A stretch of 63,160 bases of DNA, the filler included, from Lenisia limosa (Eukaryota; Protista; Breviatea), in the NCBI GenBank assembly GCA_001655205.1. It is 5 parts of 5 records of this genome, joined end to end, with 100 filler letters (N's around TTAATTAATTAA, not from the genome) between each part and the next. Parts side by side here need not be neighbours in the genome. Positions count along the whole stretch, not along the records: positions 21,217 to 39,782 come from LPNZ01010742.1; 4 more parts are not named here. One strand, given 5' to 3'. A program made the translations under genes and the position numbers. This document shows, one piece after another, positions 3,001 to 39,782 of this stretch. Under the pieces are notes generated by a model that did not search any database, had not been told where the DNA came from, and was given only the letters and a program-made list of their open reading frames with translations. Every line of letters begins with the position of its first letter. Within the stretch, counting starts at the first letter, position 1.

Positions 3001-3429
3001 TTCTCTCCTCACAACATTGGTCCTGTATTCATCTTCGTTTACCCCACCCCAGCTGGTTCAACATTGACCACAACCTTGTCTTCGAGATTCAATGTGCGGA
3101 CTTGACCCTCTCTGAGAAGTACCGTGCGGCTGTTGGACTTGTGGGAAGGCTATCTCAAATTTCGTTGAAAATACTCCAGTTTTATTAGACGGTTTTGTTG
3201 TTTCCCCTATTTCTCTAAGTTAATATTTCCTATAATATACTTGTTTCAAATTTCATAGGTTGCATAATAATGAAGCGGTTCTATGATAACATTATGTCGC
3301 TGACCTCGCAGGCTTCTGAGACTAAGGGAATCTCCCTTCGGTTTCCCCGCTTCCTGCGGCACCGTGACGACAAAAAGCCGACAGGGGCCACCAACTCCGA
3401 CCAGATCCTCGAAATGTACAACGGACAGG
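1..3429 (+). CDS. LIG1: DNA ligase I (multi-exon, 5' partial; last exon probably in the gap after 3449)
   Basis: GT-AG exons translate to [17 protein letters not shown] (~175-221), [13 protein letters not shown] (~943-980), [12 protein letters not shown] with the KxDG adenylation motif (1061-1139), [15 protein letters not shown]|[16 protein letters not shown]|[40 protein letters not shown] and [16 protein letters not shown] (~3312-3428). Confidence 0.95.
1522..1578 (+). repeat. Three tandem copies of the LIG1 intron/exon acceptor junction (ACAGT[G/T]CTGATTAACC)
   Basis: Units are spaced 19 and 20 nt apart. Only the third opens the exon (V)[11 protein letters not shown]; the first gives an in-frame TAA. 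Confidence 0.8.
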
Positions 3430-9700: not shown

Positions 9701-11114
9701 TCAATAGGGTCAAAAAGAGCCGTGGTCACCTGAATTTATAATGCCAAGAATGAATATCCCCCGTGGTCAAGATGAATGCGAAGGTCAATATTTCGATACC
9801 CCATGCACCAATTTATATTAATACTCATATATATATATAGTATATGTGAAATTGAATGCCATTAAAACAGCAGGCCGATGTTAATTCAATACCTACCGAG
9901 TATTTGACGTGACCCTGCTCCATCAGCGACAGGAATAAGGATTGGGTGTGTTTGTAGTAATCAGAGGAATGCGTTTCCAACTCCTGATGATATGAGAGAA
10001 ATTATCACCAAAAGGCGAAGTTTATTAAGAAATTTAGTCCTTTTTGTTGATCAAAGCGCCACACACAAGTTCCCAATCGAAAGAGAGAGACAAGCTGTCA
10101 AACTGTTTGTGCATGGATTTGATGTTTGCCTCAGTCCAGTCTTTGGCAGCGACGTTGTTCTAATGAGGTCAAGGTTTCTTTTGAATCTCGTTGAGCAAAT
10201 GCCATAATTTGTCCAACTTGATATTTTACTCTGGTGGCCACACTCACCGCTCTTGCAGCATTTTCGGCAGGCAAACCGAATGAGTCCCACCCCATCGGGA
10301 AGATAACCTGCGCATATAATAAGATTGAAAAAATCAATGGTTGTCTCAGTCTAAGCCTTCTAAACCACCAGTTTAAATACCGGCCTGCGTACTGTTTTTC
10401 CTTGCTGTCTAGCAAGCCGAGCAATAGCATCTGCAAATGTGTACACCCTGACATGACCTTGGGGGGGGGGGGGTTANNNNNNNNNNNNNNNNNNNNNNNN
10501 NNNNNNNNNNNNNNNNNNNNNNNNNNNNNNNNNNNNNNNNACACATACAAATACAAGAACGTAACAAAAGTAGCCTTATTGAATATCAATAAACCGGTTG
10601 TTGAATTCTGCAAACCCAAATGAAGATCTCCACTTGGATAGGGGAACATGGCTGTAATGTAGCATGGTTGTTGGTTCTACGGGGTGAACAATGTCATATC
10701 TAACAAAAAAAAAGCTCAACAACACACCACAATGAAACCTTTTATATATCATCTGTAATAAGATCTTCTACCCTTGGAATTAAGTATGAAGGATAGTAAA
10801 TTGTAAAGGTAAAAAAGTCCGCAAAAGTGGACACCAACTTTGTCATTAGTGGACGTAAAAGGAAACAGTTGAGGGTGGGAGTGGGGGCAGTTCATGCGCC
10901 AAATCTCCTGCCATTTGCTCTCAATTGTTTTATAAGGAATATCAAGCTGCCGGGGTCAGACGGGGAGGTAATAGAAGGCGAGTAATCAACGAACCTTCTT
11001 CAACGAGGGCACCACCAGCTGCCTTGCTAGCCTCTGTGGAACATTAGTGTAAATAGAAGGCTAATATCTCACCGTCAGAGGTGTACCATGATTGAAACGA
11101 CAAATTCCCAGCAT
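3727..11114 (-). CDS. LARS2: Leucyl-tRNA synthetase, bacterial/mitochondrial type (multi-exon; 3' end approximate)
   Basis: Exons: [14 protein letters not shown]|[13 protein letters not shown] (presequence-like), [21 protein letters not shown]|HVRVYT (HIGH-type), [76 protein letters not shown] (~5922-5939), [12 protein letters not shown]. Confidence 0.92.
7866..8005 (-). repeat. Six tandem copies (21-25 nt) of a LeuRS exon/intron donor junction (AAGAAAGTG|GTGAGGT)
   Basis: The + strand shows ACCTCACCACTTTCTT(CTT) six times. The outermost copy coincides with the end of the exon ...EARAHKKKV. Confidence 0.8.
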
Positions 11115-21172: not shown

Positions 21173-21379
21173 NNNNNNNNNNNNNNNNNNNNNNNNNNNN
21201 NNNNNNNNNNNNNNNNTCGCACAAAGCACTGTTGGTGAGAAACACTCGTGGGTTGAAAACAACATGATAAAAAAAGTCCAGGCCAGTCGCTTCTATTGTA
21301 GTGTTTTTATTGGGATGAGAAGCAGAAAAAGGCATTCTTGCATGCATATGTAGGAGAACAGTAGGAAAAGGTACTCTTG

Positions 21380-24300
21380 CATACATAGTTTGGAGAACAG
21401 TGTCGTCATCGGATATCTGGAGGTCCGCGATGTATCCCACGAAGTTGCCAACCTAAGGTGGTTAATCGGCAAATAAGAGAAGAAGTTGAAGAGATGAACA
21501 CTGACCGCGATAACTCATGCCACGGATAGTGCGCTTTATCCCCCACTATTGTTTTTTGCTTCAAGAANNNNNNNNNNAAAATGGCGTACAAAGCAACTCT
21601 GTTGGTGAGAAACACTCGTGGGTTGAAAACAACATGATAAAAAAAGTACAGGCACGCGCTTCTATTGTAGTGTTTTTATTGTTATGAGAAGTAGAAAAAG
21701 GCATGTAGGAGAACAGTAGAAAAAGGTACTCTTGTATACATAGTTTGGAGAACAGTGTCATCGTTGGATATCTGGAGGTCCGCGATGTATCCCACGAAGT
21801 TGCCAACCTAAGGCGGTAAATCGGCAAAAAAAAGAAGAAGTTGAAGAGATGAACACAGACCACGATAACTCATGCCACGGATAGTGCGCTTTATCCCCCA
21901 CTATTGTTTTTTGCTTCAAGAATTTCTTCCCTCTGCCCACTTGTTTCACAAATCCACCCAACCACCAATTATCTATTTGCTTCATGAAATAATTACCCCC
22001 CTTTAGTCCCTCATTTATGGCATAAAATTAAATCACCCCCCCCACAATTTTTTATCAAGGTCATAAATAGGGTTTCCCTGCGGTCGACAAGTCAAATTAT
22101 CGATATTTATCGAGGATTTATCGGGGAAATTCAGTCTTTTTTGGGAACGTAGGGAAGCCCTAATTATATCCCTCCCCCACAGGCATGCCCGCGCTAATTG
22201 AAGTGCTTGTGGCGTAACCAAAGGAAAGAGCGGTGTTGGCAGCCATTNNNNNNNNNNTTATGGCACAAAATTGAATCCCCCCCCCCCTCAATTTTTTTAT
22301 AAATAGGCCTTCCCTGAGGTAAAAAAAGACCGTCAAATTATCGATATTTATCGAGGATTAATCTCGGAAATTCAGTCTTTTTTGGGAACGTAAGGAATAC
22401 CTAATTATATCCCCCACACCCACAGGCATCCCCGCGCTAATTGAAGTGCTTGTGGCGTAACCAAAGGAAAGAGCGGTGTTGGCAGCCATTGGAGCGGACT
22501 GGCTGTTGACATAGTCCAACTGCTCGTCAGGGTCGAGGAAGCCCCAGGTCTCGCCACTTGCACACTCCACGCTGTCAACCTAAACGGTCAAATGCGGTTA
22601 AAAGCCGGGTGAAATATAAAAATTGGGTACAATTTCGGTACAATGCAATAACTTGAAGAGTACGAATTAAGTCTTTGCTCACAAAAAGACAGCAAAATTC
22701 AGCCCCCCTAACAATCATTCTGACACCCCCCCTCTCTCACCCTCGTGTGTTGTATTTTGGGCTTTTTTTTTATTTCACCTCAATGTGTGCACTCCATGAG
22801 TACCATTCAAAGCTGTTACCACCCGTTTAAATGTACAATGTGATAAGTATAAAATTAATATGCCTTAATATGTTGGGACAATTCGAGTATTGGATATTCG
22901 TTCAACCAGAATTTACAGAGTCAGGAGAACAACTATGTGGGATGACAGTACTTTAGAGTCTTGAAAGGAGTCAAAACACCCAGTAAAATGGTAGTAAGAA
23001 TGCTTCAATCAGTGATCGTATTTACGCATCATTCTAATCGACTTCCAACCACCTCTCTTCATTTTGTCGGACTCAGAGCCAGACATATCAGTCGTGCTTG
23101 TATGGCGGAAGGAATGGATCGTGAAATGGGCTGCTTCATCCTCATTAATACCAGCCTTGCAAAGATTATCCCTGATTATCCCATACACTGCTCTTGTTCT
23201 TACCATTTGGCCTGAAGGGCATATAAACAATGCATTATGAGCATTTCTAGGGTTGTTGACAGATTGAGAGAACAGGTCACTAAATGCCTTAACAGGACAT
23301 AGTTCCTGTTTGACTGTTGTAAACGCTGAAATAAAAGATGCAGTTGAGTCTTCGATAACCACAGTGTCCAGAGGTAGGCTTCTTTCCCTTTCATTTGACT
23401 CACCCATTCTGGCCGTGGCAAAGAAAGCAAAAAGATAAATAGCACGAATCAAAATATTTTCAGGGCATGTGGGAGGTCTTGTTTTATAAATCCATAGGAA
23501 GGTGTTTAGTTTGTCTTGGAACATGAGACTTGAATTCCCGTTGCAGATTCTTAAGCATTGCTGAGGGCCCAAACCGATATTAGCGGCTGTACCATAAGTT
23601 CCTCACACCCATCCGCTTGATCTTCTGACGCTGTTCGTTGAGCTGAGTAATATTGTCTGATGTGTTATTAAAGAGAATAAAAGAAAGTACTTTACTTCAC
23701 ATAGTTCAGTCAAAACAAATACATCAATCAATTAGTAACCATAGGTCTAATAATGCCATACGGTCTCAGGTACATCAACCCTTGTCAGCCCCGACAATGC
23801 AGAAAGGTCGTTGCGGCTAGCAGCATCCGCAAACTTGTTATCCCCGGTTGGAATATAAGTAAGATACATTGCATTTTTATCGTTCATTAGTCTCAGATTT
23901 ATCGATCGACAAATCTTGTTGACGACAACAGTGTTTGCAATGTTTGGTGCACCTCCATTCTCAAACCACGAGATTTCGGAGCGGTTGTCACATCCAGCGA
24001 GTATTGATGCCAGTGTCCCGAATGCGGGCCATCAACGGCAATCCACTCAAGCACGTTACTGTGTAGCTTTGCGAGCCTTGATAGGACGGGAACAGAGAAA
24101 TAGGTGCCGGAGCGTGAACAATAACCTCCAATCATTGTTGAGGAAGAATCGGTACACCAGATAGGTTCAGGTTCATCCTGGTTGGTGACTCTCTTGGGGG
24201 TTTCCAAAGTTATTACTCCTTTCCAATGAGGGTTCCCAAGTAGATCGACCAAGCTGAGAGGAAGACATTCGCCTCACCAGAGATAGAAACGGTCCCTCTG

Positions 24301-27300
24301 CGATTCTTCAATGTACTAATATCGTTGTGAATCGCTTTAGTGAGACGGCGTCCGACAGGTAATACTCTACCTGCCCAGGCTAACTTCCCTGCCAGAGACT
24401 GAAGTGACTTTACCGATTGTGATTGGCTCTTGGCAATTTCAACATCGTGAAGATATGCCGATCCTCTGTAAGAGCCTCCAAGTTGTTTTCTCACAACTTA
24501 TGAGTTTACCAGAGGGCGATGTTCTTTCGGAATAACCCCTTCTTTGATCCATCTGTTGTGAATAGCAAGAGTCGATCTTGCAAATACGTCAAAAATGACA
24601 GGGCAATTTTTGAAACCAAAGGGCATATATTCATAGCGGAAGATTTTCCCGTTAGGGCATTTGCAAAATAACCATTTCTTGCATGATTCACGGATGGGTA
24701 ATTGGTTAAATGCCTTTTCGCACCCCTTCGGGGAATTTGTCATACAAAGAAACCGTACCTGCTAGTTTCAGTTCCTTATGTATCCCGAAATAGTCTTGCA
24801 ATTCTGGTGTGCGTTTGGCCAATTAGATACTTTAGCGACAGGCGTAGCCGAACCTTTGATTCCCAAGTCAGCACCCTTTCGTTATCCATTATTGTTGGAC
24901 TGACTTTGAATTTTATCAACATCGGTGATAAGGCAAGCTCAATTGTTTATTCATTGTTTTTTAGTCCACTTTACAGAACGGATTCTCCAGCAAGCGAGAT
25001 ACGTCTTCTCGTTCAGCCGGAGGGGCAATGGGCTTTCGTTCTGGAGAGATTAATTCTTCCATAAAAGATGATTTATACCAGAAGGTAAGCCACAGGGCAG
25101 AGATAACTCTTTTTTCGCCTTGAGAACAGGAGCTGATTGGTTGGTTTCAAGCTCGGCTCTCTTATGAGAATGAACAGGATCCAAGAGGGAAAAACAACAA
25201 GAAAGGGAACTATACTTCTTCGGGATTCTGTTGTAGTTCATCATGACTTCAGGTTCCTCCTCATCGTCTTCATCGGAATCATCTTCTTCTTCTTCGGTTT
25301 CTTCGTCCTTGCGGGTCTTCTTCTTGGCGGTAGCGGCAAGCTGCTTCTGCTTCTGCTTCTTTGGCTTTAGTGATGGAGGAGGAGCAGGTACTGGGGACGG
25401 AGACCGTCCTCTCTTTGCTCTTGGATCTTGTAGCAACCATTGATTTAAGGTTTAAAGTTTTAAGCTTCATAAAGAGGCTCAGTAATCTAAATTTTCGGCT
25501 TAAATAGTACTCAATATGTGAATTTGTTATTACGATAAAATAAATTCAATATAAGTTTGTTATGGTTTATATTTTTAGTGCAGACCTGTATTGAAATAAA
25601 ACTGTTGTTGAACACACTTCTGCATCTAGAACTATTTTTTTTCCCTAAATTTTACTATTTTACCCCCCCCCCCACATTGACGATCATTCTGCCACCTTTC
25701 CGCCCCGGGTGGGAGATTTGGACAAGGTGCCAATGCAAGGAGTCAAGGAAGTCGCTACAATAGGCCGTGGCTATGACATTCTGGATCTATAGCATGATAA
25801 AAAGCAATTCAATATATAGGCTATGACACCCCAGACCGTGATGAAAAAGAAGCTATTCATTATAATTCACAACAAATTCTTGGTCTCTTTTAAACAAAAG
25901 TGAAGCCTCATCTGGTCTGACTCAGTAATTCTTTCCACCCGGTTCGTGATTAGTACCTTTACGCAAATATTCTTCATCGAATTTCCTTCGTTTCACCCCC
26001 CCCCCTCCCGGGTCCTTAAAGCAGGTTGAGGTTGGAGAATTGTCACGGATATCGGAATATAAACTTTCGGTTACACCACACCCCCACCACTTTTCAGGAG
26101 AACCCCACCAAAACCCCGGTCATCACGAAAATCGCAATTGTTGTTCTATCTCAATAATAATCTTTTAAATACACTCAATCAAAATCACGCAAGTTACGCT
26201 CGTTTACGTCTCTTTTTTCCCTTCAACCGAGCCAGGTTCTCCAACCATANNNNNNNNNNNNNNNNNNNNNNNNNNNNNNNNNNNNNNNNNNNNNNNNNNN
26301 NNNNNNNNNNNNNNNNNNNNNNNNNNNNNNNNNNNNNNNNNNNNNCGTAGTAAGCTCCCAACCCCGCGTCCCTCTATAACGTCAGTGTTAAAGCAGGTCT
26401 CAAAACCAGATTCATAATGTAATCTTAACCCCAAATACATGAATTTGATACCGTTTCGATAGTTTTTAAGAATTTATCGTGAAATTCAGTCATTTTTTTT
26501 TATTTTAAGTAAAACCCTAATGCTCTCCCCAATAACCTTGGGTGGCTGTACGCTGACCCCCCAAATCAGATNNNNNNNNNNAGACCCCGCGTCCCTCTAA
26601 AACGTCAGTGTTAAAGCAGGTCTCGAAACCAGATTCATAACGTAAAACCGAGCCCCAAATACATGAATTTGAACGTTTTTCAGAATTTTCGTGAAATTAT
26701 TTTTTTAAAATGTAAGTGAAACCCTAATGCTCTCCCCAATAACCTTGGGTGGCTGTACGCTGACCCCCCAAATCAGATGGGCGTAAAAGACCGTAAAAGC
26801 CTCGGGAAAGGACGTAGAAATGGTCGACTGTCCGTCCGGAGTGAGAACGTCCTCAATGTACACCCAGAAAGACATCGTTGTTGTGACTGAATGATGTAAG
26901 GGAAGGGTTGGGAAAACAAATTATAGCATAATAGACCCGTTTTAATTATCATACAGTGTATATCATATAGCTACTATAGGTATGCATAGCTATATGATTG
27001 TATATATTATGTGTATGTGGGTGGGATAAACCACGTGGTCCTTTCCCACTGTTTTCAAATGTGGCAACGAAACGCATCATATCTGAAGCAAATACCTGGG
27101 AAAAGGTGAGAGGAACGCAGTTTTTGGGGTGATGGGATGTGCTGATTGAATGTTTGGGAAGTCAACCGAATTCTTCTGAATACCCCCCCCCCCCNNNNNN
27201 NNNNNNNNNNNNNNNNNNNNNNNNNNNNNNNNNNNNNNNNNNNNNNNNNNNNNNNNNNNNNNNATAAAAAAAGATTCTTGTGAACACCACCATCCTAGGC

Positions 27301-30300
27301 AGAGTCACAACCTCAAACCGCTGCTGGTCCACTCGAGTCTTGAGGTATCTACTGAGCTGTTGACTGTACAGCTGTAGAAGGACTGGTTGAACGCAGGCGA
27401 ATAAAATCCTAGTGGAACCGGGAGACACACGCTACTTCATGAGAAACGCAATTCAATGATATGTTGTTTCCAATACACTACGGCGCATCGACTTAGAATT
27501 CTTGTGAAAACGTTGGAATTACCATATTTTACATGGTAATCCCATGGAATTTTATGGTAATTTGAAGAAATTTATGGATTCCCAAATAATACAAGGGAAT
27601 CCCGTGTCCATGCGCAGCGCAGAAGCCATCCACCATCACATTTATTTATTATAAGAGAATTATAGTATTATACTAATTCACTCAGTAATTTACCTTACAA
27701 CTCGGTGCATGCCTGCCTCCCAGATTAATTATCGCCGCCAGCCCTCAATAGATTATTTGTTTCATGCACTGCCGCCAGCCCTCAATAGATTATTTGTTTC
27801 TACTACCGCCAGCCTTCAATGCAATAGCTCCCAAAAAACGCATTGCCAACCTCTGCTTGCTGTCAAAGAAATAATCCTGGAGTCGGCATATAACCGGGCA
27901 GTCTGCATCGTGTNNNNNNNNNNNNNNNNNNNNNNNNNNNNNNNNNNNNNNNNNNNNNNNNNNNNNNNNNNNNNNNNNNNNNNNNNNNNNNNNNNNNNNN
28001 NNNNNNNNNNNNNNNNNNNNNNNNNNNNNNNNNNNNNNNNTAACAAACACGAGCAAAACGCTAAAACAAGACAAAAACCGACTGGGGGGCGGGTAAAATT
28101 GGAAAATATATGAATCAAAAAAAAAAAATATCCCAAATCAACTCTGGTCTGACAACACAGAAGGGTTGATAACAACAAAACAAATAAAGCCCAGACCAGT
28201 CGCTTCTGCAGCACCGCATTCGATTATGCGTAGAAAAAAATTCCCCGTCACGGTTTTTTGATTGAAAAAAATACTGTTTGGAAGAGGGGCAGTCAAATAC
28301 AGTGTTGATCGAAAAATCGGTTGGAGAAATGGGGAGGCTAAAAATTCATCACGAAAAATACGTTCAGAGTGTAAAAGTAGGGCTCCGTGTAATTAATTTT
28401 TTGAGGAAGTTAATTGTCAAAATTGAAAATTTAAAGTATCTGGAATAGGGTCATCATTACAATATGTCCGACTATATTTTGAAATAAAATTTTCAATTAG
28501 TTGCACTGACCCCTAGTAAAAAGCTTACATAAGGGTTTCTTGGTTCGCAGTCTTGAAGAGNNNNNNNNNNNNNNNNNNNNNNNNNNNNNNNNNNNNNNNN
28601 NNNNNNNNNNNNNNNNNNNNNNNNNNNNNNNNNNNNNNNNNNNNNNNNNNNNNNNNNNNNNNNNNNNNNNNNNNNNNNNNNNNNNNNNNNNNNNAAAAAA
28701 AAAAGAAGTTGTATCTGGCCGAAGCCGCCCACACCATCACGCCTTTAAGAGATATTGGATTATGGTAACATGCGTTTTGCCACAGTCTATTAGATCAGTA
28801 CAAATTTAGGGCTTACAGGATAGTCAAGGCCGTATTTCCCTTTTGGAATAGTCTCACAGCTGTCCGTTTCAGTTAAGTACTTGGTGGGATCAATGCACCC
28901 CTAGATAATCAAATGTGATTTGGAGTTCTGAAGATAACATATTTGTTAAAAAATAAGAAGTATAAGAGAGGAAGGAGGCTGGGAGTGAAACAAAAAACAA
29001 ATCAAATATTTAATTGGTTTTGCCAGATAATCCTAATCTTGATAGTTTGATCTTATACTATATTGATATATTGATATGTACATATTATGTATCTCGAATA
29101 TTATATGCTCGCGGCCCTAAATTTGGTCATTAATTGTTTTTTTGAGCTTTAAAGCCGCAGAAACCAATTTTTAGCCCAGTTTTCATACCACATTTAATTT
29201 CTGGGTTGTTTTGAGTTTTTCAAAAAAAAATTTCACGCACAACATTTCAGATGAATTACATGCGTTTTTCCGACTAAAAAAGTTAGTGGCCAGTATAAAC
29301 GACTCGTAAATTTAGCGGAATCCAAGGCTAAACAAGCAAGTTGCAGATAAAAATCATCGCTTGAAAAGCATACCAAAAGATAGCTACGAGTTATAGAAAG
29401 TTGTTTCCGCTATGTAAACTCCCGAATGTCGAGAAAGCTGTCAAAGATGTTAATAAAACACTTATTTTTGGAATTTTCCGTTGTTTTTCCATATAAGGCA
29501 AGTCCTTTCGGTAGTGAGAGAAATTTTTACAGGAAAGTGTTGATTTTTATCTGCAACTTGCTTATTTAGCCTTGGATTCCATAAATTTACTTGAGTCGTT
29601 TATAATGGCCACAAGCTTTTTTAGTCGGAAAAACGCATGTAATTCATCCGAAATGTTGTGCGTGAATTTTTTTTGAAAAACTCAAAACAACCCAGAAATT
29701 AAATGCGGTATAAAAACTGGGCTAAAAATTGGTTTCTGCGGCTTTAAAGCTCAAAAACAAACAATTAATGACCTAATTTAGGACTGCGAGCATATATGTA
29801 CATAGCTGTATCATCGTATATCATATATAATATGTAAAAATGAGAAGTAACTCAAGGTTTTATCTGGCCAAAGTCGTGCTATTTCTTTGACAGCATTCTT
29901 GATCATCCTTCTAATATTATACTTTTTTGCTCATTATGATCCCAAAAGCTTCAGCCTACCCTTGAGCAGAGAGTGTCAGAGATTGTGAACGTCAGCTCAG
30001 GTGTGANNNNNNNNNNATCTGAATGATGTAAGGGAAGGGTTGGGAAAACAAATTAGAGCATAATAGACCCGTTTTAATTATCATATATCATATAGCTAGG
30101 TATGATATAGCTATACGATTGTATAGGTGTGTGTGTGTGGGATAAACCATGTGGTCCTTTCCCACGGTTTTCAGCTGTGGCAATGAGACGCATCATATCT
30201 GAAGCAAATACCTGGGAAAAGGTGAGAGGAACGCAGTTTTGTCATTATCCAAATAACGAAGAATTGGGGATGGGATGGTGTTGATTGAATGTTTGGGAAG

Positions 30301-33300
30301 TCAACCGAATTCTTCTGAATACCAACAAGCTGATAATAGTCCTCCCCCCTCTCACTTCATCATTTGAAATGATACTTCTGGCGGATAGTGAGTATGTGCA
30401 GTTGTCAACTCCTCCTCCTATGCAATAAAAAAGTTTCTTGTGAACACCGCCATCCTAGGCAGAGTCACATAGCCTCAAACCGCTGCTGGACCACTCGAGT
30501 CTTGAGGTATCTACTGCGCTGTTGACTGTACAGCTATAGAAGGACTGGTTGAAAGCAGGCGAATAAAAGCCTAGTGGAACCGGGAGACACAAGCTACTTC
30601 GTGAGAAACGCAATTCAATGATATGTTGTATCCAACACGCTGGAGCGCATCGCCTTGGGATTCTTGTGAAAACGTTGGAATTACCATAATTTACATAGGA
30701 ATCCCATGGAATTTTACTGAAATTTGAAGAAATGTATGGGATTTCCAAATAACATCAGGGAATCCCAAGTCGATGCGCCGCAGTGCAGAAGCCATCCACC
30801 ATCACATTTTTATATTATAGGAGAATTTACTCAGTAATTTACCTTACAACTCGGTGCATGCATGCCTCCCAGATTAATCATCACCGCCAGCCCTCAATAG
30901 ATTATTTGCTTCATGCACTACCGCCAGCCCTCAATAGATTATTTGCTTCCACTACCGCCAGCCTAAAATGCAATAGCTCCCAAAAGATGCATTGCCAACC
31001 TTTGCTTGCTGTCAAAGAAATAATCCTGGAGTCGGCATATAACCGGGCAGTCTGCATCGTGTNNNNNNNNNNNNNNNNNNNNNNNNNNNNNNNNNNNNNN
31101 NNNNNNNNNNNNNNNNNNNNNNNNNNNNNNNNNNNNNNNNNNNNNNNNNNNNNNNNNNNNNNNNNNNNNNNNNNNNNNNNNNNNNNNNNNNNNNNNNNNN
31201 NNNNNNNNNNNNNNNNNNNNNNNNNNNNNNNNNNNNNNNNNNNNNNNNNNNNNNNNNNAATTTATGAAATAAAATAAAGTTTAAAATGCAGAAGTGTGTT
31301 TAACAACGGTTTTATTTCAGAAATAACAAAGGTTGCGTAGAAATAAGAAATAAGGTTTACCCTTATTTCGAAAATCAATTCACGGGCTATCTAAGTCCCC
31401 TAATTAGATTTATACTTCTACATTCACTTTACTTTTAGAGCCTCTATCGTCAAATTTTTGAGCTATTTTGGTATCTACAAAAGCGTGCCCGCTCGCCATT
31501 TTGGCCCCTCAACCGCAGCCTGCTGCCAAGACCAGGAAGACCAAGAAGACCCAGAAGAAGAAGGCTGCTGCATCTGAGGCTGAGGAGAAGGCTTCTACCG
31601 TTGCTTTTGACGATGACGATGACTACTATGATCTCGAGGAGGTCGAAGAAGTTCGTCAATTATTGGATTGATTTAAGCTTACGCAACACAATTCAATATG
31701 GATAGACTACTTAAAAGTGAACTTGAATATTGGATGAAAGGACCTTTAAACTTGCCTTATTAGGAAGTTAGGGAGAAATTAGCCTTGTGCCCGCCAAAAA
31801 TATGGGTATATTGTATATTTATTCATATCACCCCCCCCCCCTTGTAACCATCTGATAATTCAGAGGAATTTCCGACAATGTGCTCCCAAAGATTAAGGAC
31901 GAGGAGGCGCACAATACCCTCGTCCTGGCCCTCCGAGGTATCATTCATCTGGGACAATAACTTCCGAGTATTTGGCTCTTATATTCAGAGCTTGAATCTG
32001 GTATCCGCCAAAGACGCGTTGAACAACAATAATATATCTTAGGTGGTCCCGTGGATGTTGTAAACAGAAGTTCATTCAGTTCTCCTGTTTCGGGAAGGTT
32101 AAAAAAGGCAAAAAGTAACACGGGCCGGACTAACCCAGAGCTAGGGGTTTCAGCCGCCTGCTGGTTTAGCCCAGGGCTCTGCTCCAAAGATATCACCTTG
32201 GTCTTGTTGTTAAGGAGATTAAAGTAGGTAAAATTATGCTCTGTTAACATGGCCGGAGAACGTAAGAAAGGTAAGCCCTTGTCGAAATGATATTTCAACT
32301 CGGACACCGGATGTACAAGGGCAACTTGCAGCCATAAACATGCGTGCTTAAATTGTAAGCGCCAGGGACACCCCGTGAAATCCTGTTTCAAGGTTAAACA
32401 GGGCCCCAATAAGGCTGATCAGTAGTTAGTAAATGCATGTTGTTTCTCAATCTTTCCCGGTGCAAGTCTCATGAAGATGAGGGTGCAATAACAGAACAAC
32501 TTTGACAATACACAGGGCTCCGAAGGACCGAAGACAGGAGTTTATATGTCTCAATGGCCGACTACAATGCTTATTACGGTTCCAGTATGCGAAAGGCGAA
32601 TGACCCATGGGAAGGTGAAGAATTATGAGATCGTCAACTAGCACCCTCCCCTCTACTTCCTTATTACAAAATCAACCCGATGATTATGGACCAAGAAATA
32701 GAAAAATCTCATTTTCAAGAGCGAGATGTTGTTTCCGCAATTCTGTGGAAAGGTACTGATCTGGGTATTAAGGACTCTGCTGTTACACGTAACAAGGTAC
32801 AAAATTGGCCAAATGCCGAAGTCAATACGAAATTAATTTCTGAAGCCTCTAAGATATTGAAAAAGTCCTGTACTGTCGTTGAGGTTGCGTCTCTCCCTGC
32901 GAGGGCAAATATTAACCCTGTCGGTGTGGTGATCAAAGAGATTCCACATCTGAAAAAGACAAAGATTCGTCCAATTTAGACGGCTCCTTTTTGGCTGAAG
33001 AAACATTGAAGCGAACGTTTAACTTGGATCGAACATCTGGTCTTACCCAAATGCTGCAACCTGGATATCGATATGTGCTTTTCTCAGCAGATATGGAAAG
33101 CGCATTCAATCTGCTACCCATTCGTGAGTCAAGCCAAAAATGGATGCACTGCAAGACCCCGGATGGTAAGATCTTCCTTTTTCGCTTTCTACCCGTTGGG
33201 TTCCAAAACTGTCCTATTTTGTTCGACGTAATCTCACGTGATGTCCAATCTGGCCGTTGGGCAAAGGAAGGCGAAATTTTGACTGAGTTTCCCATATGCT

Positions 33301-36300
33301 GAACTCTACCTCTGTATATTTCACTCAGGATGAACTACTTTTTGCTCACCATATGGGATTCCGACAATGGTCCAAAATACCAAGATAGTGGCAAAGATGT
33401 ATCTGCCCAACAATTCATTTTCAGCACCGCCAAAAATGCTGTCAAAATAGATGGAAATAACCCATTTTGTTTCATCGAAAATTTCTTTCGGAAAGGACAT
33501 TAGGTAGTCTAGTTCATCCTGCAACTCGCATGACTGTCTTGGGGGTGGAATTGGATACTCCGTCCATAACTGCCCGTCTCCCCAAAGGCAAGATACAGGC
33601 GTATTTACATCACCTGAACTATGCAATCAACTCACCCCTTGCTGTGAAGTCGCTACAATCTTTAGCTGGAAAGCTAGCCTGGGCCGCCCGTGTTATTCCT
33701 GCAGGCCGGCCCCTCACTAAGTCTATCCATAATGAGATCAGCCGGATCCACTCTTCTTCATCAGCTGTTGAAGCCTCGGAGGATGCCAAGATCGGAATGA
33801 AGTATTGGATTAATCTCTTGAATAATCCCCACTGGTTAGGTATCATAACGTTGGACCCTCCGAAACGCCTCACGGACCAGGACATTCCTCTCTGGTGTAG
33901 TGACGCCAGCATGATCGGTGGCTATTGTGTACAGTCAAAGCGAAAATTCCTGTTGAATGCAAAGACTTGCACATTAATGTACTTGCGTTGATAGCAGTAT
34001 AGGCCGCATTTATGATTTTTGGCAAGAATCTTCCAACAAACTCCAGCATTTTAGCGGGGTGTGACAATATGAGCGCAATCTCTTGGTTTCATAAAGGTGG
34101 TGCCTCACCTTCCCTCCAAAACTCTCGGGTAGCGAATGCTATTTGCTTCTCGCTAAACCCTCTTGTTATGTCATTACAATGCATCATGCACCTGACATAC
34201 ATCCCGACTGCTGATAACAAGCTTGCGGACGCTGCCTCACGCAATGATTTGTTTGCTTTATGCGGAAGTATGGACTCTTGCTTAGTCACGCAATTTATCT
34301 TTCTTCCCACCATCTTGGCTTCAGTAATGTTAGCTTGTTGTTTCTGAATATGTTTCGGTGGTATGTAGATGTATGGAAGATGCTGTTTAAATTTATGTGT
34401 TCAAATTCTGTAGATTCTTTGTTCAATAGAGCTGTAGCTAATATTGCCTCGTGTAAAGTATTTATTGAAATTGGCTCCACTCCAAAAAAAAAGTAGTGCA
34501 TTCATGAGTTATTGGCCCCACTATTGACTGGAGCGGAGTCATTTAGGTGTGTCGTTTATGATACTTATAATGCGCAAATTATTTGTCTTTGAGACTGAAA
34601 TTTATTAATTTGCGTTGTTTTACGAGGTAGACTATGCTGCCAAATTGGAACAGAGACGCCAGCAAATCAAACTCATGGGTGTTAGACAAACCACCAAAAA
34701 GACATATGGAACCGCCGTCAGGATATATAAAGATCTCTGTTCAAACCTGGGATATAATGAGATGCCCATGTCAGAGTACACGGTAAGGACCTTATTAGCA
34801 ACCTAATACTCCCCAGATTGAGCTCTGGATAGCAGAAGTCTCTACATCGACCAAGAGTCCTCAGACTATCGCTGGATATGTTTCATCTTTGGCGAGATAC
34901 GCTCTTGAGAATGGACAAGAGCATCCAACAAAAAACCGTTTCGGTCCAGCTTCAATGGTCAAGAACCTCCAACAAGAGCTAAGGAAAACTCATGAGAACA
35001 AACTGTTGGAGTCTGTTTCGAGAAAGGAGAATGGCATTTCCTTCGTTTCAGCCTTTAAAAAGAACTCCAATAAACCTTTGACTTATCGTTACAGAATGGC
35101 GTTTAAGAGGGACTTGTCCGGTTAGGGCTCTTGGCCAATTATTCGAGCAATCAAAGGCAAACGTCAAGAACACCCACCATGCCCTTTTTGTATGGCCATC
35201 TGGGAGTATACTTCGAACCAGAGCCATGTATGATATCCGTAATGACCTCATGAGAAAGGGATTATCCGAGAATAAAGCCAAACTGTACACCATTCATTCC
35301 TTCCGCTACTGCAGCGTCACTGATATGACTGGCACAGATGAAGAGAAAATTAAGAGGGGCGGCAATTCAACAAAGAATNNNNNNNNNNNNNNNNNNNNNN
35401 NNNNNNNNNNNNNNNNNNNNNNNNNNNNNNNNNNNNNNNNNNNNNNNNTGACAAATTACAAAATCTTTAAATTTGTATATGTGGGATAAAAAGCGCAAAT
35501 CAACTCTGTTGGCTGACAACACACAAGGGTTGATAACAACAAACCAAATAAAGCCCAGACTAGTCACTTCTGCAGCACCACATCCCATCGTAAAATGTAT
35601 CTAAAAGAATTCCCCGTATAATATGGTTTTTTGATTGGAAAAAAAATACTCTTTGTAAGAGGGGCAGTAAAATACAGTGTTTATCGAAAAATAGGTTGGA
35701 GAAATAGGGGAGGCTAAAAATTCATCATGCAAAATACGTTCAGAGGCACCTTGAAATTCATTTTTTGAGGAAATTAATTGTCAAAATTGAAAATTAAAGT
35801 GTCTTGAATAGGGTTCTCGTTAAAACATGTCCGACGATATTTTGAAATAATTTTTTTTCAATTAATTGCACTGACCCCTAGTAAAAAGCTTACATAAGGG
35901 TTTCTTGGTTCGCAGTCTTGAAGAGTCTCATAAGTCTGCAGGTGAGAATTGCAGTAAAGCACGGGCGTGTACGTGGGGGAGGGGGGGGATACAAGTGTGA
36001 AAATAGTTCCAAGGTTTTATCTGGCTGAAGCCATCCACACCATCACGCTATTGGAATTGGCCGAAGCAGTCTATTTGAGTATATCATATATAGTAATGAG
36101 AAATAAAAATAAGTTGTATCTGGCCGAAGCGTCCACACCATCACGCTTTTAAGAGATATTGGATTATGGTATCATATTAATTCACCCAATCATTTGCCTT
36201 ACAACTCTGTGAACACAGCTTTCTGCGCGCCTCCCCACAGTCTATTAGAGTAGTACAAATTTAGGGCTTACAGGATAGTTGAGGCCGTATTTTCCTTTGG

Positions 36301-38642
36301 GAATAGTCTCACAGCTGTCCGTTTCAGTTAAGTACTTGGAGGCGTCAATGCACCCCTAGATAATCAAATGTGATTTGGAGTTCTGAAGATAACATATTTG
36401 TAATAAGAGAGGGAGCAGGCTGGGGGTGAAACAAAAATCAACTCAAATATTTAATTGGGCTTTGCCTTGATAATCCTAATCTTGATAGTTTGATCTTATA
36501 TGTACTAAATTGATATATGGTATCATATCATCGTATATGCTCGCCAAAATTAGGTCACTGATTGTTATTTTGAGCTTCAAAGCCGCAGAAACCCATTTTT
36601 AGCCCAGTTTTCATACCACATTCAATTTCTGGTTATAAACGACTCAAGTAAATTAATAGAATCCAAGGCTAAATAAGCAAGTTGCCGATAAAATTATATG
36701 GAAAAACAACGGAAAATTTCAAAAATCATTATTTTATTACATCTTTGACAGGTTTCAACTTTCGGGAGTTTACATAGCGGAAGCAACTTTCTATAACTCT
36801 TAGCTATCTTTTGGAATACTATTACGNNNNNNNNNNNNNNNNNNNNNNNNNNNNNNNNNNNNNNNNNNNNNNNNNNNNNNNNNNNNNNNNTGGACGGGGA
36901 TATGTAAAAATGAGAAGTAATTCAAGGTTTTATCTGGCCAAAGTCGTGCTATTTCTTTGACAGCATTCTTTGATCATCCTTCTAATAGTATAGCTATTAC
37001 TTCTTTGATCATCATGATCCAACAGCTTCAGCCTACCCTTGAGCAGAGAGTGTCAGAGATTGTGAACGTCAGCTCAGGTGTGAGTGATTGAGGGCAGTTT
37101 TTCAGGAGACAGTACACCGAGTATTTGCCCGCAGGTACTGCCTGATTGGGTTAAATAACTGAGGGGGGGGGGGTAAAATTGGAAAATTTTTTGAAATAAA
37201 ACAGCCCAAANNNNNNNNNNNNNNNNNNNNNNNNNNNNNNNNNNNNNNNNNNNNNNNNNNNNNNNNNNNNNNNNNNNNNNNNNNNNNNNNNNNNNNNNNN
37301 NNNNNNNNNNNNNNNNNNNNNNNNNNNNNNNNNNNNNNNNNNNNNNNNNNNNNNNNNNNNNNNNNNNNNNNNNNNNNNNNNNNNNNNNNNNNNNNNNNNN
37401 NNNNNNGGGAAACAATTCAAGTTGGGAGAGACACAAAACAAATTAAGAGGTTACAATTTGAGCAGCATATTAAGATTGTTTCCCTATATTTTTAATGTTA
37501 TGAAATCTTGGTCAAAAAATTCTCCCTTCAAATCACGCGAGCTAATCAGTATTTTTAGTGCAAACAATAACAACCCCTCCCCCCATTTCTTCATCTCCCA
37601 AGCCATGCTTACGAAAGCAAAGCCACTCTGCGTACAGTACTCATCGGGGGGGCAGTCAAGAACACGGCAATTTTTATCAAATGCTGGGGGGTAAAATTGG
37701 AAAATTTATGACACAAAAAAAGCCCAAATCAGTTTTGTTCGCTGATAAGAAAATTGGACAATTTATAAAAAACAAAACCCAAAGTCCTCTGTTGGAGGGG
37801 GGGGGGGGCTNNNNNNNNNNGGGAAACAATTCAAGTTGGGAGAGACACAAAAAAAATCGTCAGAGGTTACATTTTGAGCAGCATATTAAGATTGTTTCCC
37901 AATATTTTTAATGTTATGAAATCTTGGTCAAAAATTTCTCCCTTCAAATCACGCGAGTTAATCAGTATTTATAGTTTTTTATAGCAAACAATAACCCCCC
38001 ACACCCATTTCTTCATCTCCCAAGCCATGCTTACGAAAGCAAAGCCACTCTGTGTACAGTACATATCGGAGGGGCAATCAAGGCTACGGCAAATCGCATC
38101 ATATGCTGGGGGGGTAAAATTGGAAAATTTATGAAACAAAAAAAGCCCAAATCAGCTCTGTTCGCTAACGAAAACATTCTCAGAACAAAGAACAATTGTG
38201 AAAGACACATTACAGCATTGTAGTTGACAGTTACCCACGATTAGTGATGACAACGTTTCGCGGTTTTTTCTTAACCGCTGGAGTGTTAGTGTAGAAATGG
38301 CCAGAAAATGAACAAGTCTTATTGCTTGTCAAAAATGTTCATGATTTTTAATACAGCTAGCCAGTTAAAAATGCATACAATCCAATCAGAGAAGGTTAAA
38401 AATAAAAAATACTAACGACATTTTCCGATATTTTCAAAAAAATTCACAAGAAATGATCCCATCATAACTAGGGCTTCACTTCGGTTCGAAGAAAGACTAA
38501 ATTTCTCGATGAATCATCTAAAATCATCGATAATTTCCTGGTATTTTTCGTATCGAAGTTAAGCCCTGAGCCAACAAAGACACCCACCATCCCGAGGGAT
38601 CGCACGAGGCTCTCTGTCGGTCCTTCTTCGTGCCTGCGTGTC
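21380..38642 (-). CDS. Large multi-exon putative surface/secreted protein with cadherin-like motifs and Cys-rich segments (incomplete; several exons present twice)
   Basis: Exons: AVKKKPRNVVITN|PYDAICRSLDCPSDMYCTQSGFAF (38272-38035); AVPAGKYSVYCLLKNCPQSLTPELTFTISDTLCSR|GCIDASKYLTETDSCETIPKGKYGLNYP|TYETLQDCEPRNPY; FYSPAFNQSFYSCTV; LIATAENRGKGP|LTTTMSFWVYIEDV; VYIPDIRDNSP; FLDPDEQLDYVNS. The cadherin assignment rests on motif resemblance only. Confidence 0.5.
22068..22162. mobile_element. 95-bp MITE (TAGGG family), duplicated at ~22307-22403
   Basis: TIRs TAGGGTTTCCCTGCG ... CGTAGGGAAGCCCTA. The internal sequence is shared with the 38469 and 61805 copies. Confidence 0.75.
22771..25634 (-). mobile_element. 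DIRS/Ngaro-like tyrosine-recombinase retrotransposon, copy 1 (2.9 kb, heavily internally deleted)
   Basis: Order on the minus strand: basic/acidic gag-like start (25430-25050); RT pieces (KGADLGIKGS; AFNQLPIRES...YMPFGFKNCPVIFD); KSLQSLAGKLAW; RNase H (WCTDSS..IGGY, SNVLEWIAV, YIPTGDNKFADAASR); then YR. Confidence 0.88.
23009..23640 (-). pseudogene. Tyrosine recombinase ORF of YR copy 1
   Basis: RAIYLFAFFATARMGE (box I Arg), LCPVKAF, TIHSFRH (HxxR), RGGWKSIRMMRKYDH (catalytic Tyr). The N-terminus is deleted and frameshifted. Confidence 0.85.
29104..29794. mobile_element. Foldback/MITE element with ~250-bp imperfect inverted arms and ~180-bp spacer
   Basis: 29104-29357 is the reverse complement of 29540-29794 (TGCTCGC...AAAGCCGCAGAAACC...AATCCAAGGCTAA). 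TA-flanked. A deleted, inverted copy lies at 36535-36826. Confidence 0.85.
32680..34347 (+). pseudogene. Reverse transcriptase-RNase H of YR copy 2, frameshifted, with the catalytic core inverted
   Basis: ORFs 32680-32979, 32991-33302, 33467-33991 and 34012-34347. The YFDS (YxDD-equivalent) segment reads on the minus strand at 33338-33509. Confidence 0.85.
34615..35378 (+). pseudogene. Tyrosine recombinase ORF of YR copy 2 with a putative 34-nt intron (34783-34816)
   Basis: KTYGTAVRIY...MSEYT|IELWIAEV...SPQTIAGYVSSLARY joins in frame after removing GTAAGG...CTAATACTCCCCAG. Later CPVRAL and TIHSFRY. Box I (RxGE) is missing. Confidence 0.8.
37684..37790 (-). repeat. Intron-end repeat family (GGGGGTAAAATTGGAAAATTTATGAAAC-A7-GCCCAAATC), copy ending at a 3' splice site
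   Basis: The reverse complement ends TTTTCCAATTTTACCCCCCAG|, followed by the exon AFDKNCRVLDCPPDEYCTQSGFAF. Homologues at 28082, 37165, 38106 and 58059, and degenerate at 1145-1203. Confidence 0.8.
38469..38568. mobile_element. 100-bp MITE (TAGGG family)
   Basis: TIRs TAGGGCTTCACTTCG ... CGAAGTTAAGCCCTG. Confidence 0.75.
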
Positions 38643-38840
38643 TAGAGAGGAGGTTGGGGTTAGAAAGCAAAAATAACCCAAAAGAAACTCTTTAAGGGGT
38701 TTTCAAACAAATTAGTAACACAAAAATAGTAATAAAAAAAGCCTTGAGGAAAAACATCTAAATAACACGAAATAGCAACAATTACTTTCTTAAGAAATCT
38801 AAAGTGCTATATATATTATATATTATACTATATAATATAT

Positions 38841-39782
38841 AGGTCAGTGAATAAAAAGGGGCCCAGGTGAATAAAAAGGGGGCCAGTTTTTGAAAAAATG
38901 TCTTGTTTGTGAGGATAGTCTTCTTTTTGTTCCGTCTTAGTGTACTTTTCTTCTCGGAAACGATGGATAAGAGAGTAAACAATGTACATAAGTCAAAACT
39001 AAAATAAGAGAAACAAGACAACATAAAAACTATTCACGAGAGCTCCAACCTAAAATAGTCAAAAATGACTCGAATACGCCCTTTTAATCAATTAATGGTG
39101 TGAACTACCATCGGGTGTGGTTCGTGTGATATGGACAAACGATACATATAGGTGGGGGGACATGACCGTGTCCACTTTTTTTTTATTTTCTTCAAAAAAA
39201 CACAAAAAATGTTGCGAAGGGGAAAGCAATAACTCTCAGTGTATAAAACATCACAAGCTGTATTTTTCAGAAAGGTTCTAATACAAACATCAAAGCTCAT
39301 AAAAGCAATCGAAAAATGTAGACACTCAGCATAAGATTTTCTTCTAAAAGTAAGACATAAAACTAAATGACAAACTTCTATTTCATTTTTCTTCACAGGG
39401 CGCTTTTTCGTAGTCTTGGCCTTCCCCTTTCTTGAAAAGTCATTCCAATTTTGCACAATATTTAAAAACCTTTTCTTGCTTCTGCATGTTTCTCTTCTTT
39501 TCTTCGACATTAGCTTTCTTGATTCTTGCCATTTCTTTTTTCCGATTTTCCAACAATACTTCAGGTTGAAGTTGAGTCTTCAACAAATTATAGGTCATTC
39601 CATGGTAAAACACCTGGATTTTCTTCAAAGAACTTAATTTCCTTTCGGTAATTTGGTCACGATGTTTAGCAATCACTGCCCAAGCCTCAGCAGTTTTCTC
39701 ACTTGAAATATTCTCCTTGTTAGCTGCTTGAATCATATTAATTAACTCTTGAGTATTCAATTGGCAAGAGTAGAGAGCGGAT
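38841..39782 (-). mobile_element. Truncated transposon-like segment carrying an ORF homologous to the accessory ORF of the pogo-like element
   Basis: ORF LINMIQAANKENISSEKTAEAWAVIAKHRDQITE aligns with the 45493 ORF LIQLIRSAKDKLTTAEEAKKAWESIAHERDALTE. It ends in 2x GTGAATAAAAAGGGGCCCAG next to a TA run. Confidence 0.5.

Follow-up and report, generated by a model that had tools for sequence, protein, structure and literature searches.

DIRS-1 of Dictyostelium inserts into other DIRS-1 copies and forms centromeric clusters. The general context of that element is treated in PMC7192593. DIRS1-like elements insert where the genome carries the same 3 bp as their circle junction, and no target-site duplication results (Piednoel et al. 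2011, PMC3266345), and the junctions listed for them are often ATT, GTT or TTT/AAA (PMC3266345). In Cafeteria burkhardae, Ngaro elements are found inside endogenous virophages (91% for type 1), the lineages differing in their preference (Hackl et al. 2021, PMC8547959), so the nesting of a tyrosine-recombinase (YR) retroelement in another mobile element is already known. Introners are transposons that create introns (PMC12130899). Here, we set beside these systems a locus of the breviate Lenisia limosa (GenBank assembly GCA_001655205.1). In a window of 63,160 nucleotides (nt), the piece at positions 21217-39782 (LPNZ01010742.1; eukaryotic, 40.5% G+C and dense in short repeats) holds two degraded YR retroelements, c1 and c2, each of which interrupts a copy of a short dispersed repeat, R1. 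Our reading, held with moderate confidence, is that both are dead YR retrotransposons from two lineages, which would have integrated through a short, A-rich core, and that R1 was hit often but not exclusively.

An initial annotation had placed two YR elements here, and searches with Pfam and tblastn confirmed remnants of reverse transcriptase (RT) and YR at both places, with RVT_1 fragments in each (Pfam). The RT, RNase H and YR regions are collinear between c1 and c2 at 51-64% amino-acid identity (tblastn), in agreement with the further claim that the two differ clearly in protein. The order in c1 is 5' motif, K/E-rich open reading frame 1 (ORF1), RT fragment, RNase H region and YR; at 2.9 kb versus 4.2 kb for c2, it has undergone several internal deletions, and both copies carry many stops and frameshifts. 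Across 408 aligned codons, nucleotide identity is 58%, the synonymous difference pS is 0.83 (saturated), and the nonsynonymous difference pN is 0.30; the two lineages thus diverged as working coding sequences before each copy died. The 5' terminal motif, also described earlier as shared, is identical at 31 of 34 positions between c1 and c2 and recurs in two further copies. Contig L006 of the ENA assembly ERZ3820729, an independent assembly of the same genome that was reached via the c1 protein, covers the same locus with 99.95-100% identity over c1, c2, and most of the flanks.

A full R1 copy is ~130 nt long and runs from a variable G-run through GTAAAATTGGAAAATTTATGAAAC, seven A's, and GCCCAAATCA...CTGAC... 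to the end CTTCTGCAG; its start (GTAAAA) resembles a 5' splice site, its CTGAC a branch site and its end a 3' splice site, which gives it the look of an intron. A hidden Markov model (HMM) trained on three intact copies found, at a cut-off of E≤0.01, 12 copies in the 44 kb scanned, which comprised the window piece and two more contigs of ERZ3820729 (L001 and L007). In the piece, the left half of R1 occurs four more times at three or fewer mismatches, where none is expected from 100 shuffles; its left edge is the variable G-run adjoining unique sequence. Uninterrupted copies exist, as had been claimed, in a segment that we call unit A (Table 1) and in at least 67 contigs from a DNA run of the same organism, where the left half continues directly into the right half. 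Contig depth gives estimates of more than 100 copies for the R1 left half, ~25-30 for the 5' motif, and 1-4 for the element interior. The central observation of the annotation, that the same repeat is split at the same A-tract, was upheld: R1 sites rebuilt from the joined flanks match the R1 HMM for both c1 (E 1.3e-7) and c2 (E 1.7e-16), and the joints 22771>25648 and 22777>25656 in DNA-run contigs skip c1, giving an uninterrupted R1. Both elements break R1 at its central A-run, the exact base being ambiguous within the run, and the A-runs that flank c1 (25635-25642 and 22763-22771) may belong to either the element or the target.

Two local repeats lie close to these insertions. On the minus strand, a direct repeat of 14-17 nt (CAGAATGATYGTYA) at 25677-25693 (the exon end) and 22711-22727 (in the intron) brackets the shortened R1 of c1; it could have arisen as a target duplication when R1 inserted, or by duplication of local sequence. 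At the 5' junction of c2 (L006 6545-6636; window 31260-31324), the left arm of R1 and the element's TTTTATTTCAGAAAT make up a 15-nt inverted repeat, 93% complementary and with a 35-nt loop.

Three further copies, c3, c4 and c5, come from L007 and L001, bringing the total examined to five. The likeness of c3 to c2 begins at AAATAAAATAAAG inward and is lost close to the 5' junction, no more than a few bases away, the sequences being unalike outward, and that of c5 to c1 extends to GGTGAAA and the A-run at the 3' end and stops there. The flanks of c3 (p=0.79) and c5 (p=0.996) bear no likeness to R1, and the R1 HMM has no match in the flanks of c3, c4 or c5. Because c3 shares the 5' end of c2, and c5 the 3' end of c1, both without an R1 half, the R1 halves are target sequence and not element ends, which contradicts the alternative offered in the annotation, namely that the repeat is an internal-deletion derivative of the element. 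For c4, the joined flanks give a weak alignment along the full length of R1 (score 35 versus 22.4 ± 4.2 when shuffled, p=0.011), with the breakpoint ~4 nt rightward. Unrelated flanks at other copies had been named as evidence against homing; they were found for c3 and c5 and at best half so for c4. A homing retrotransposon would have most of its independent insertions in the same target, whereas two of the five copies are clearly in R1, one (c4) is weakly so, and two (c3 and c5) are not. R1 is, judging by the flanks compared, not an obligatory target.

The comparison supports the view that c1 and c2 represent two independent insertions by diverged lineages. A single ancestral insertion copied together with its flanks was considered and rejected: the interiors of c1 and c2 retain only the 58% identity given above, with saturated synonymous sites, yet the flanks still match R1. 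It is also contradicted by the nearest relatives of c1 and c2, which have other flanks.

The host sequence of c1 is an intron. A poly(A) RNA contig on the minus strand has two joints, the first from 25674 to 22577 and the second from 22422 to 21805; the reading frame is open through three exons of the host gene, and the intron's GT (25675-25674) adjoins the G-run of R1. RNA contigs have no depth within c1, except for a trace close to its 3' end. Two other short repeats in the window are of very high copy number. One, at 22258-22391 (GTGGGTGTGGGGGATATAAT...; ~500 copies by contig depth), stands at the 5' start of the host gene's second intron, and the other, at 25940-25981 (~1000 copies by contig depth), is led by a G-run on the strand of the gene; several families of G-run-led short repeats seem to be located at intron starts.

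Every junction that could be read is A-rich, at four of four 5' ends and four of four 3' ends. The 5' ends (c1-c4) all start with AA(T/A)AAAATA, followed ~20 nt on by the motif ATGCAG(A/C)AGTGTGTT...TTTTATTTCA, and the 3' ends all read G(T/A)GAAAT (GGGAT in c2) and then 3 to 11 A's. The centre of R1, TGAAAC plus A7, nearly equals the element 3' end with its A's, and the same string occurs inverted (TTTTATTTCA) within the 5' motif of four copies. No non-A target-site duplication was found at c1, c2 or c4, nor against the empty site of unit A, although a duplicated A-run would escape notice. Separately, an 8-9 nt direct match connects the 5' motif with sequence lying 20-60 nt short of the 3' end (25603-25610 and ~22822-22830 in c1; L007 8990-8998 and 11024-11032 in c4). 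It differs by lineage in step, being AACAGTTT in c1 and c5 and GATAGTTT in c4, and, while not significant alone, might represent a split repeat of very small size.

We propose that two lineages of a single YR retrotransposon family left c1 and c2 as old, now dead insertions, each of which would have hit the central A-run of a separate R1 copy. Integration would have proceeded as in known YR retroelements, with a short stretch where the two element ends are joined, here A-rich, recombining with its exact match in the genome. The R1 centre would mimic the element junction and is multi-copy; as a near copy of the junction that is present many times, R1 would be hit repeatedly, not exclusively, and insertions into intronic R1 copies would be spliced out, as seen for c1. 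A short A-rich core like that of DIRS1-like elements accounts for every junction without invoking homing, and ordinary short-core, A-rich integration is the likely rule. Beyond that, we infer that R1 was favoured by mimicking a longer core. The proposal that the family homes into an intron-associated repeat survives in part: the same R1 site was hit twice, and c1 lies in a spliced intron starting at R1, but homing as a rule of the family does not agree with the flanks of c3 and c5, and the claim is reduced to a possible preference for R1.

Whether even that preference is needed depends on the null model. Insertion at any AAA or A-run, with the two R1 matches due to local density and to selection in the initial annotation, would dispense with it. 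R1 is dense here, at 12 copies in 44 kb, and holds 6.3% of A/T runs of at least six, so that the probability of at least two of five copies in R1 is only 0.035, and that post hoc; in addition, at most one of the three unselected copies is in R1. However, under a null of any AAA/TTT, for which R1 A-runs hold 1.4% of the 3-bp sites, the same probability is 0.002. Moreover, c1 and c2 share both the run that they entered and their orientation, the likeness of the R1 centre to the element 3' end goes beyond the A's (TGAAAC versus TGAAAT), and the flanks of c4 may be a third, diverged R1. Insertion without preference is unlikely in our view, though by no means negligible. Strict homing into R1, with the flanks of c3, c4 and c5 altered by later rearrangement, truncation or decay, appears quite improbable. 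It can appeal to the 3' truncation and Tc1-like insertion of c3, the 5' truncation of c5, the weak alignment of the joined c4 flanks with the whole of R1, and the 5' motif copies estimated by depth; short contigs may extend into the R1 left half. Yet the c3 5' and c5 3' junctions are intact, and it is there that the likeness to c2 and c1 ends, while the flanks beyond show no likeness to R1; at a specificity of 90%, one or none of three unselected copies in R1 has P=0.028.

A different route altogether would have transcripts of YR elements retrocopied by LINE-type machinery that nicks at T-runs and primes on the poly(A) tail. The A-runs after every 3' end, the 5' truncation of c5, the failure to find terminal repeats in c1, c2 and c4, and the shared start base of the full-length copies, as if from one transcription start, all fit such a route, but the missing non-A target-site duplications (at c1, c2 and c4 and against the unit A empty site) do not; the c4 3' end has just three A's, and examination of 44 kb revealed no LINE. 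We regard it as very improbable. That R1 is built from the element's own ends, as a solo or non-autonomous derivative, and travels with it is contradicted and almost certainly wrong. Ngaro elements do leave solo AB repeats (PMC8547959), and the last 20 nt of c2 are faintly like the end of the R1 left half, but c3 and c5 have the relevant ends without R1 halves, R1 is found in at least 67 contigs against the 1-4 interior copies of the element, and its left edge is a variable G-run beside unique sequence.

Several points also weigh against A-rich short-core integration with R1 as a frequent target. The enrichment test is post hoc, c1 and c2 having prompted the finding; none of the three unselected copies is clearly in R1, c4 being a weak candidate (p=0.011), which leaves 0 to 1 match. 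Just five copies, all degraded, were examined; neither a circle junction nor an intact element was seen, and the attachment core is deduced from A-rich junctions of low information. The terminal repeats thought to be needed by YR retroelements were not found in c1, c2 or c4, and R1 is unusually frequent on both contigs studied (12 copies in 44 kb). A bolder reading, which we consider rather improbable, would make these elements a separate YR lineage that lacks long terminal repeats and uses a core of ~10 nt (TGAAAY plus A's), also present inverted 45 nt inside the 5' end; the intron-like R1 would mimic this core, leading to preferential intronic nesting hidden by splicing.

As in the DIRS order, RT, RNase H and tyrosine recombinase lie on one strand without an rve integrase, collinearly in c1, c2 and c4, and the set of ORF1, RT/RNase H and YR in that order, with no methyltransferase, is the gene content by which Ngaro elements are defined (PMC3266345, PMC8547959). 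In c2, only ~270 nt separate the RNase H region (ending at 34347) from the YR region (starting at 34615), leaving no room for the methyltransferase domain that follows RNase H in DIRS1-like and PAT-like elements; nor was that domain found in the relatives P0066 (an RT-RNase H-YR fusion of 1066 amino acids) and L008 (too short for element ends), in which YR directly follows RT/RNase H. DIRS1-like elements have inverted terminal repeats and internal complementary regions, but no significant inverted repeat was detected between the first 200 and the last 300 nt of c1, c2 or c4 (p 0.61-0.88), nor were the split direct repeats of Ngaro, A1-[ORFs]-B1A2B2, for which the ends of the same copies were at chance (p 0.50-0.70). 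A repeat search of these three copies gave nothing above chance, which in copies so old and deleted is not proof of absence. Since neither kind of repeat was detected, membership in Ngaro or the DIRS1-like group is not established, and the content, so far as gene order indicates, is Ngaro-like.

A profile search across 1.8 billion representative proteins returned 7549 relatives, those outside this genome being at most 38% identical. In word-based protein searches, the c1 recombinase ORF matched just the window's own protein and c5, a junction-spanning ORF had no match, and the RT/RNase H piece matched one distant protein. Protein Atlas look-ups placed the RT/RNase H piece only in generic eukaryotic retroelement clusters and gave no usable match for the host exon; a metagenome scan with the 5' motif yielded three chance matches, none in motif context. 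One distant relative, which has no bearing on the present question, is on the long contig of another organism (L005); within one called gene there, a tandem array (9995-10837, period 222 nt) consists of four to five units of a 73-amino-acid RT-thumb segment.

Table 1. Positions of the retroelement copies, R1 copies, host exons and intron, and assembly features (window coordinates unless a contig is named)
Feature	Position	Strand	Basis or remarks
c1 (lineage I), a degraded YR retroelement with internal deletions	22772-25634	-	comparison with c5 and R1
c1 conserved 5' terminal motif (ATGCAGAAGTGTG...TTTTATTTCA)	25596-25629	-	genome copies estimated from contig depth (see text)
c1 recombinase ORF, 187 amino acids, HxxR motif and C-terminal Tyr	23009-23572	-	Pfam PF00589 Phage_integrase, E 4.4e-8
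R1 left half (G-run and TAAAAT...) upstream of c1	25643-25673	-	R1 comparison, HMM
R1 right half (shortened) downstream of c1	22738-22762	-	R1 comparison, HMM
Host-gene intron, 3096 nt, GT..AG, containing R1 and c1	22580-25675	-	spliced RNA contig
Exons flanking the c1 intron	25781-25676 and 22579-22424	-	RNA contig and frame check
c2, degraded YR retroelement, lineage II, ~4.2 kb	31268-35487	+	start ambiguous within 31267-31275; gap 35379-35448 filled by L006
c2 conserved 5' terminal motif	31286-31319	+	sequence comparison
Visible end of R1 left half before c2	31259-31267	+	remainder in gap, read in L006 6636-6597
A5 run and R1 right half after c2, reaching the CTTCTGCAG end of R1	35488-35575	+	sequence comparison
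Uninterrupted R1 of unit A, empty-site homologue of the c2 insertion; A12 run 28117-28128	28084-28211	+	
Three further R1 copies, intact or gap-cut	37164-37210, 37678-37755, 38100-38179	+	HMM
c3	L007 3700-1083	-	78-87% to c2; 3'-truncated, interrupted by Tc1-like transposon
c4	L007 8957-11046	+	third lineage; both ends present
c5	L001 4179-4871		76-78% to c1; 5'-truncated
Unit A	26887-30006	+	78-92% identity to unit B (30019-31062 plus 35488-37083), without c2
10-N gaps	21568-21577, 22248-22257, 26572-26581, 30007-30016, 37811-37820		five of five in the piece lie between diverged copies of the same sequence

The gaps of the window bear on how the locus is read, and L006 bridges several of them. 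That at 26250-26345 is 84 nt in L006; that at 31063-31258 is 199 nt and includes the complete R1 left half ahead of c2; and that at 36827-36890 is likewise bridged. At 35379-35448, where the C-terminal catalytic part of the c2 recombinase is expected, L006 has 77 AT-rich nt, so the catalytic end of this recombinase has been removed. The duplicates on either side of the 10-N gaps are 78-92% identical, and none of them is present in L006; to judge from the two assemblies, they probably represent haplotypes that have diverged and were placed in tandem, or else paralogues that the other assembly collapsed. As all such duplicates are absent from L006, the same choice applies to units A (26887-30006) and B (30019-37083): either the scaffolder stacked two haplotypes that had diverged, or the other assembler merged paralogues. 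The sizes of the gaps within unit A (27195-27263, 27914-28040, 28561-28694), for which L006 gives no cover, fit collinearity with unit B, and the empty site sits on one gap-free stretch (28041-28560).

Some further features were noted in passing. Unit A contains an inverted repeat of 260 nt at 92% identity (29102-29362 and 29535-29796), partial in unit B (36534-36823), which could represent a foldback or MITE-like element. Nothing relevant emerged when the piece was scanned for tRNAs and against Rfam, the sole match being a sub-threshold MIR319 on another repeat. The RT/RNase H part of c3 on L007 has given way to a Tc1/mariner-type transposon (1870-3240, minus strand), which has inverted ends and retains part of a transposase (Pfam HTH_Tnp_Tc3_2, E 2e-7). 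The pairs c1/c2 in the window and c3/c4 on L007 each consist of elements from different lineages whose 5' ends point toward each other across 2-6 kb, and the intervening sequence is non-homologous between the two loci. Many of the public gene calls on L007 and L001 have in-frame stops under table 11 and look spurious.

Introners would be expected to occur as many near-identical copies, each forming a whole intron spliced at the element ends. Set against them, R1 is alike in being short and multi-copy, with a consensus that runs from GTAAAA to the pyrimidine-rich CAG end CTTCTGCAG, and in having one copy exactly at the start of an RNA-supported intron. It is unlike them in that this is the one copy with RNA support, that some copies are in a non-coding context, and that those in units A and B have no obvious flanking exons. 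DIRS-1 of Dictyostelium is likewise a YR retroelement accumulating within repeats, but by self-nesting in centromeric clusters, whereas a short unrelated repeat is hit here. DIRS1-like elements (PMC3266345) resemble the present copies in the short, often A/T-rich sequence at both ends (ATT, GTT, TTT/AAA) and, apart from a possibly duplicated A-run, in the lack of a clear target-site duplication; they differ in their inverted terminal repeats, internal complementary regions and methyltransferase, none of which was found here. The family is isolated, at no more than 38% identity to anything outside this genome, and the terminal repeats that define DIRS, PAT and Ngaro were not found in it, which bears on how such elements replicate.

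The Ngaro elements of Cafeteria share with c1 and c2 a Gag-like ORF, RT/RNase H and YR without a methyltransferase, and some of their lineages lie mostly within another mobile element. Those elements, however, are ~6 kb long, many are intact, and they have clear A1-[ORFs]-B1A2B2 split repeats, whereas no terminal repeats were found here and all copies are dead; moreover, the host here is a ~130-nt repeat hit at one A-run, with two, perhaps three, of five copies nested. Five dead copies at present carry only the ordinary reading of A-rich short-core integration with an often-hit repeat. If the preference for R1 is real, this would be the second case, after the Cafeteria Ngaro elements, of a recombinase retrotransposon favouring another mobile element, and the first in which the host element is intron-like, which would provide a simple route to harmless insertions.

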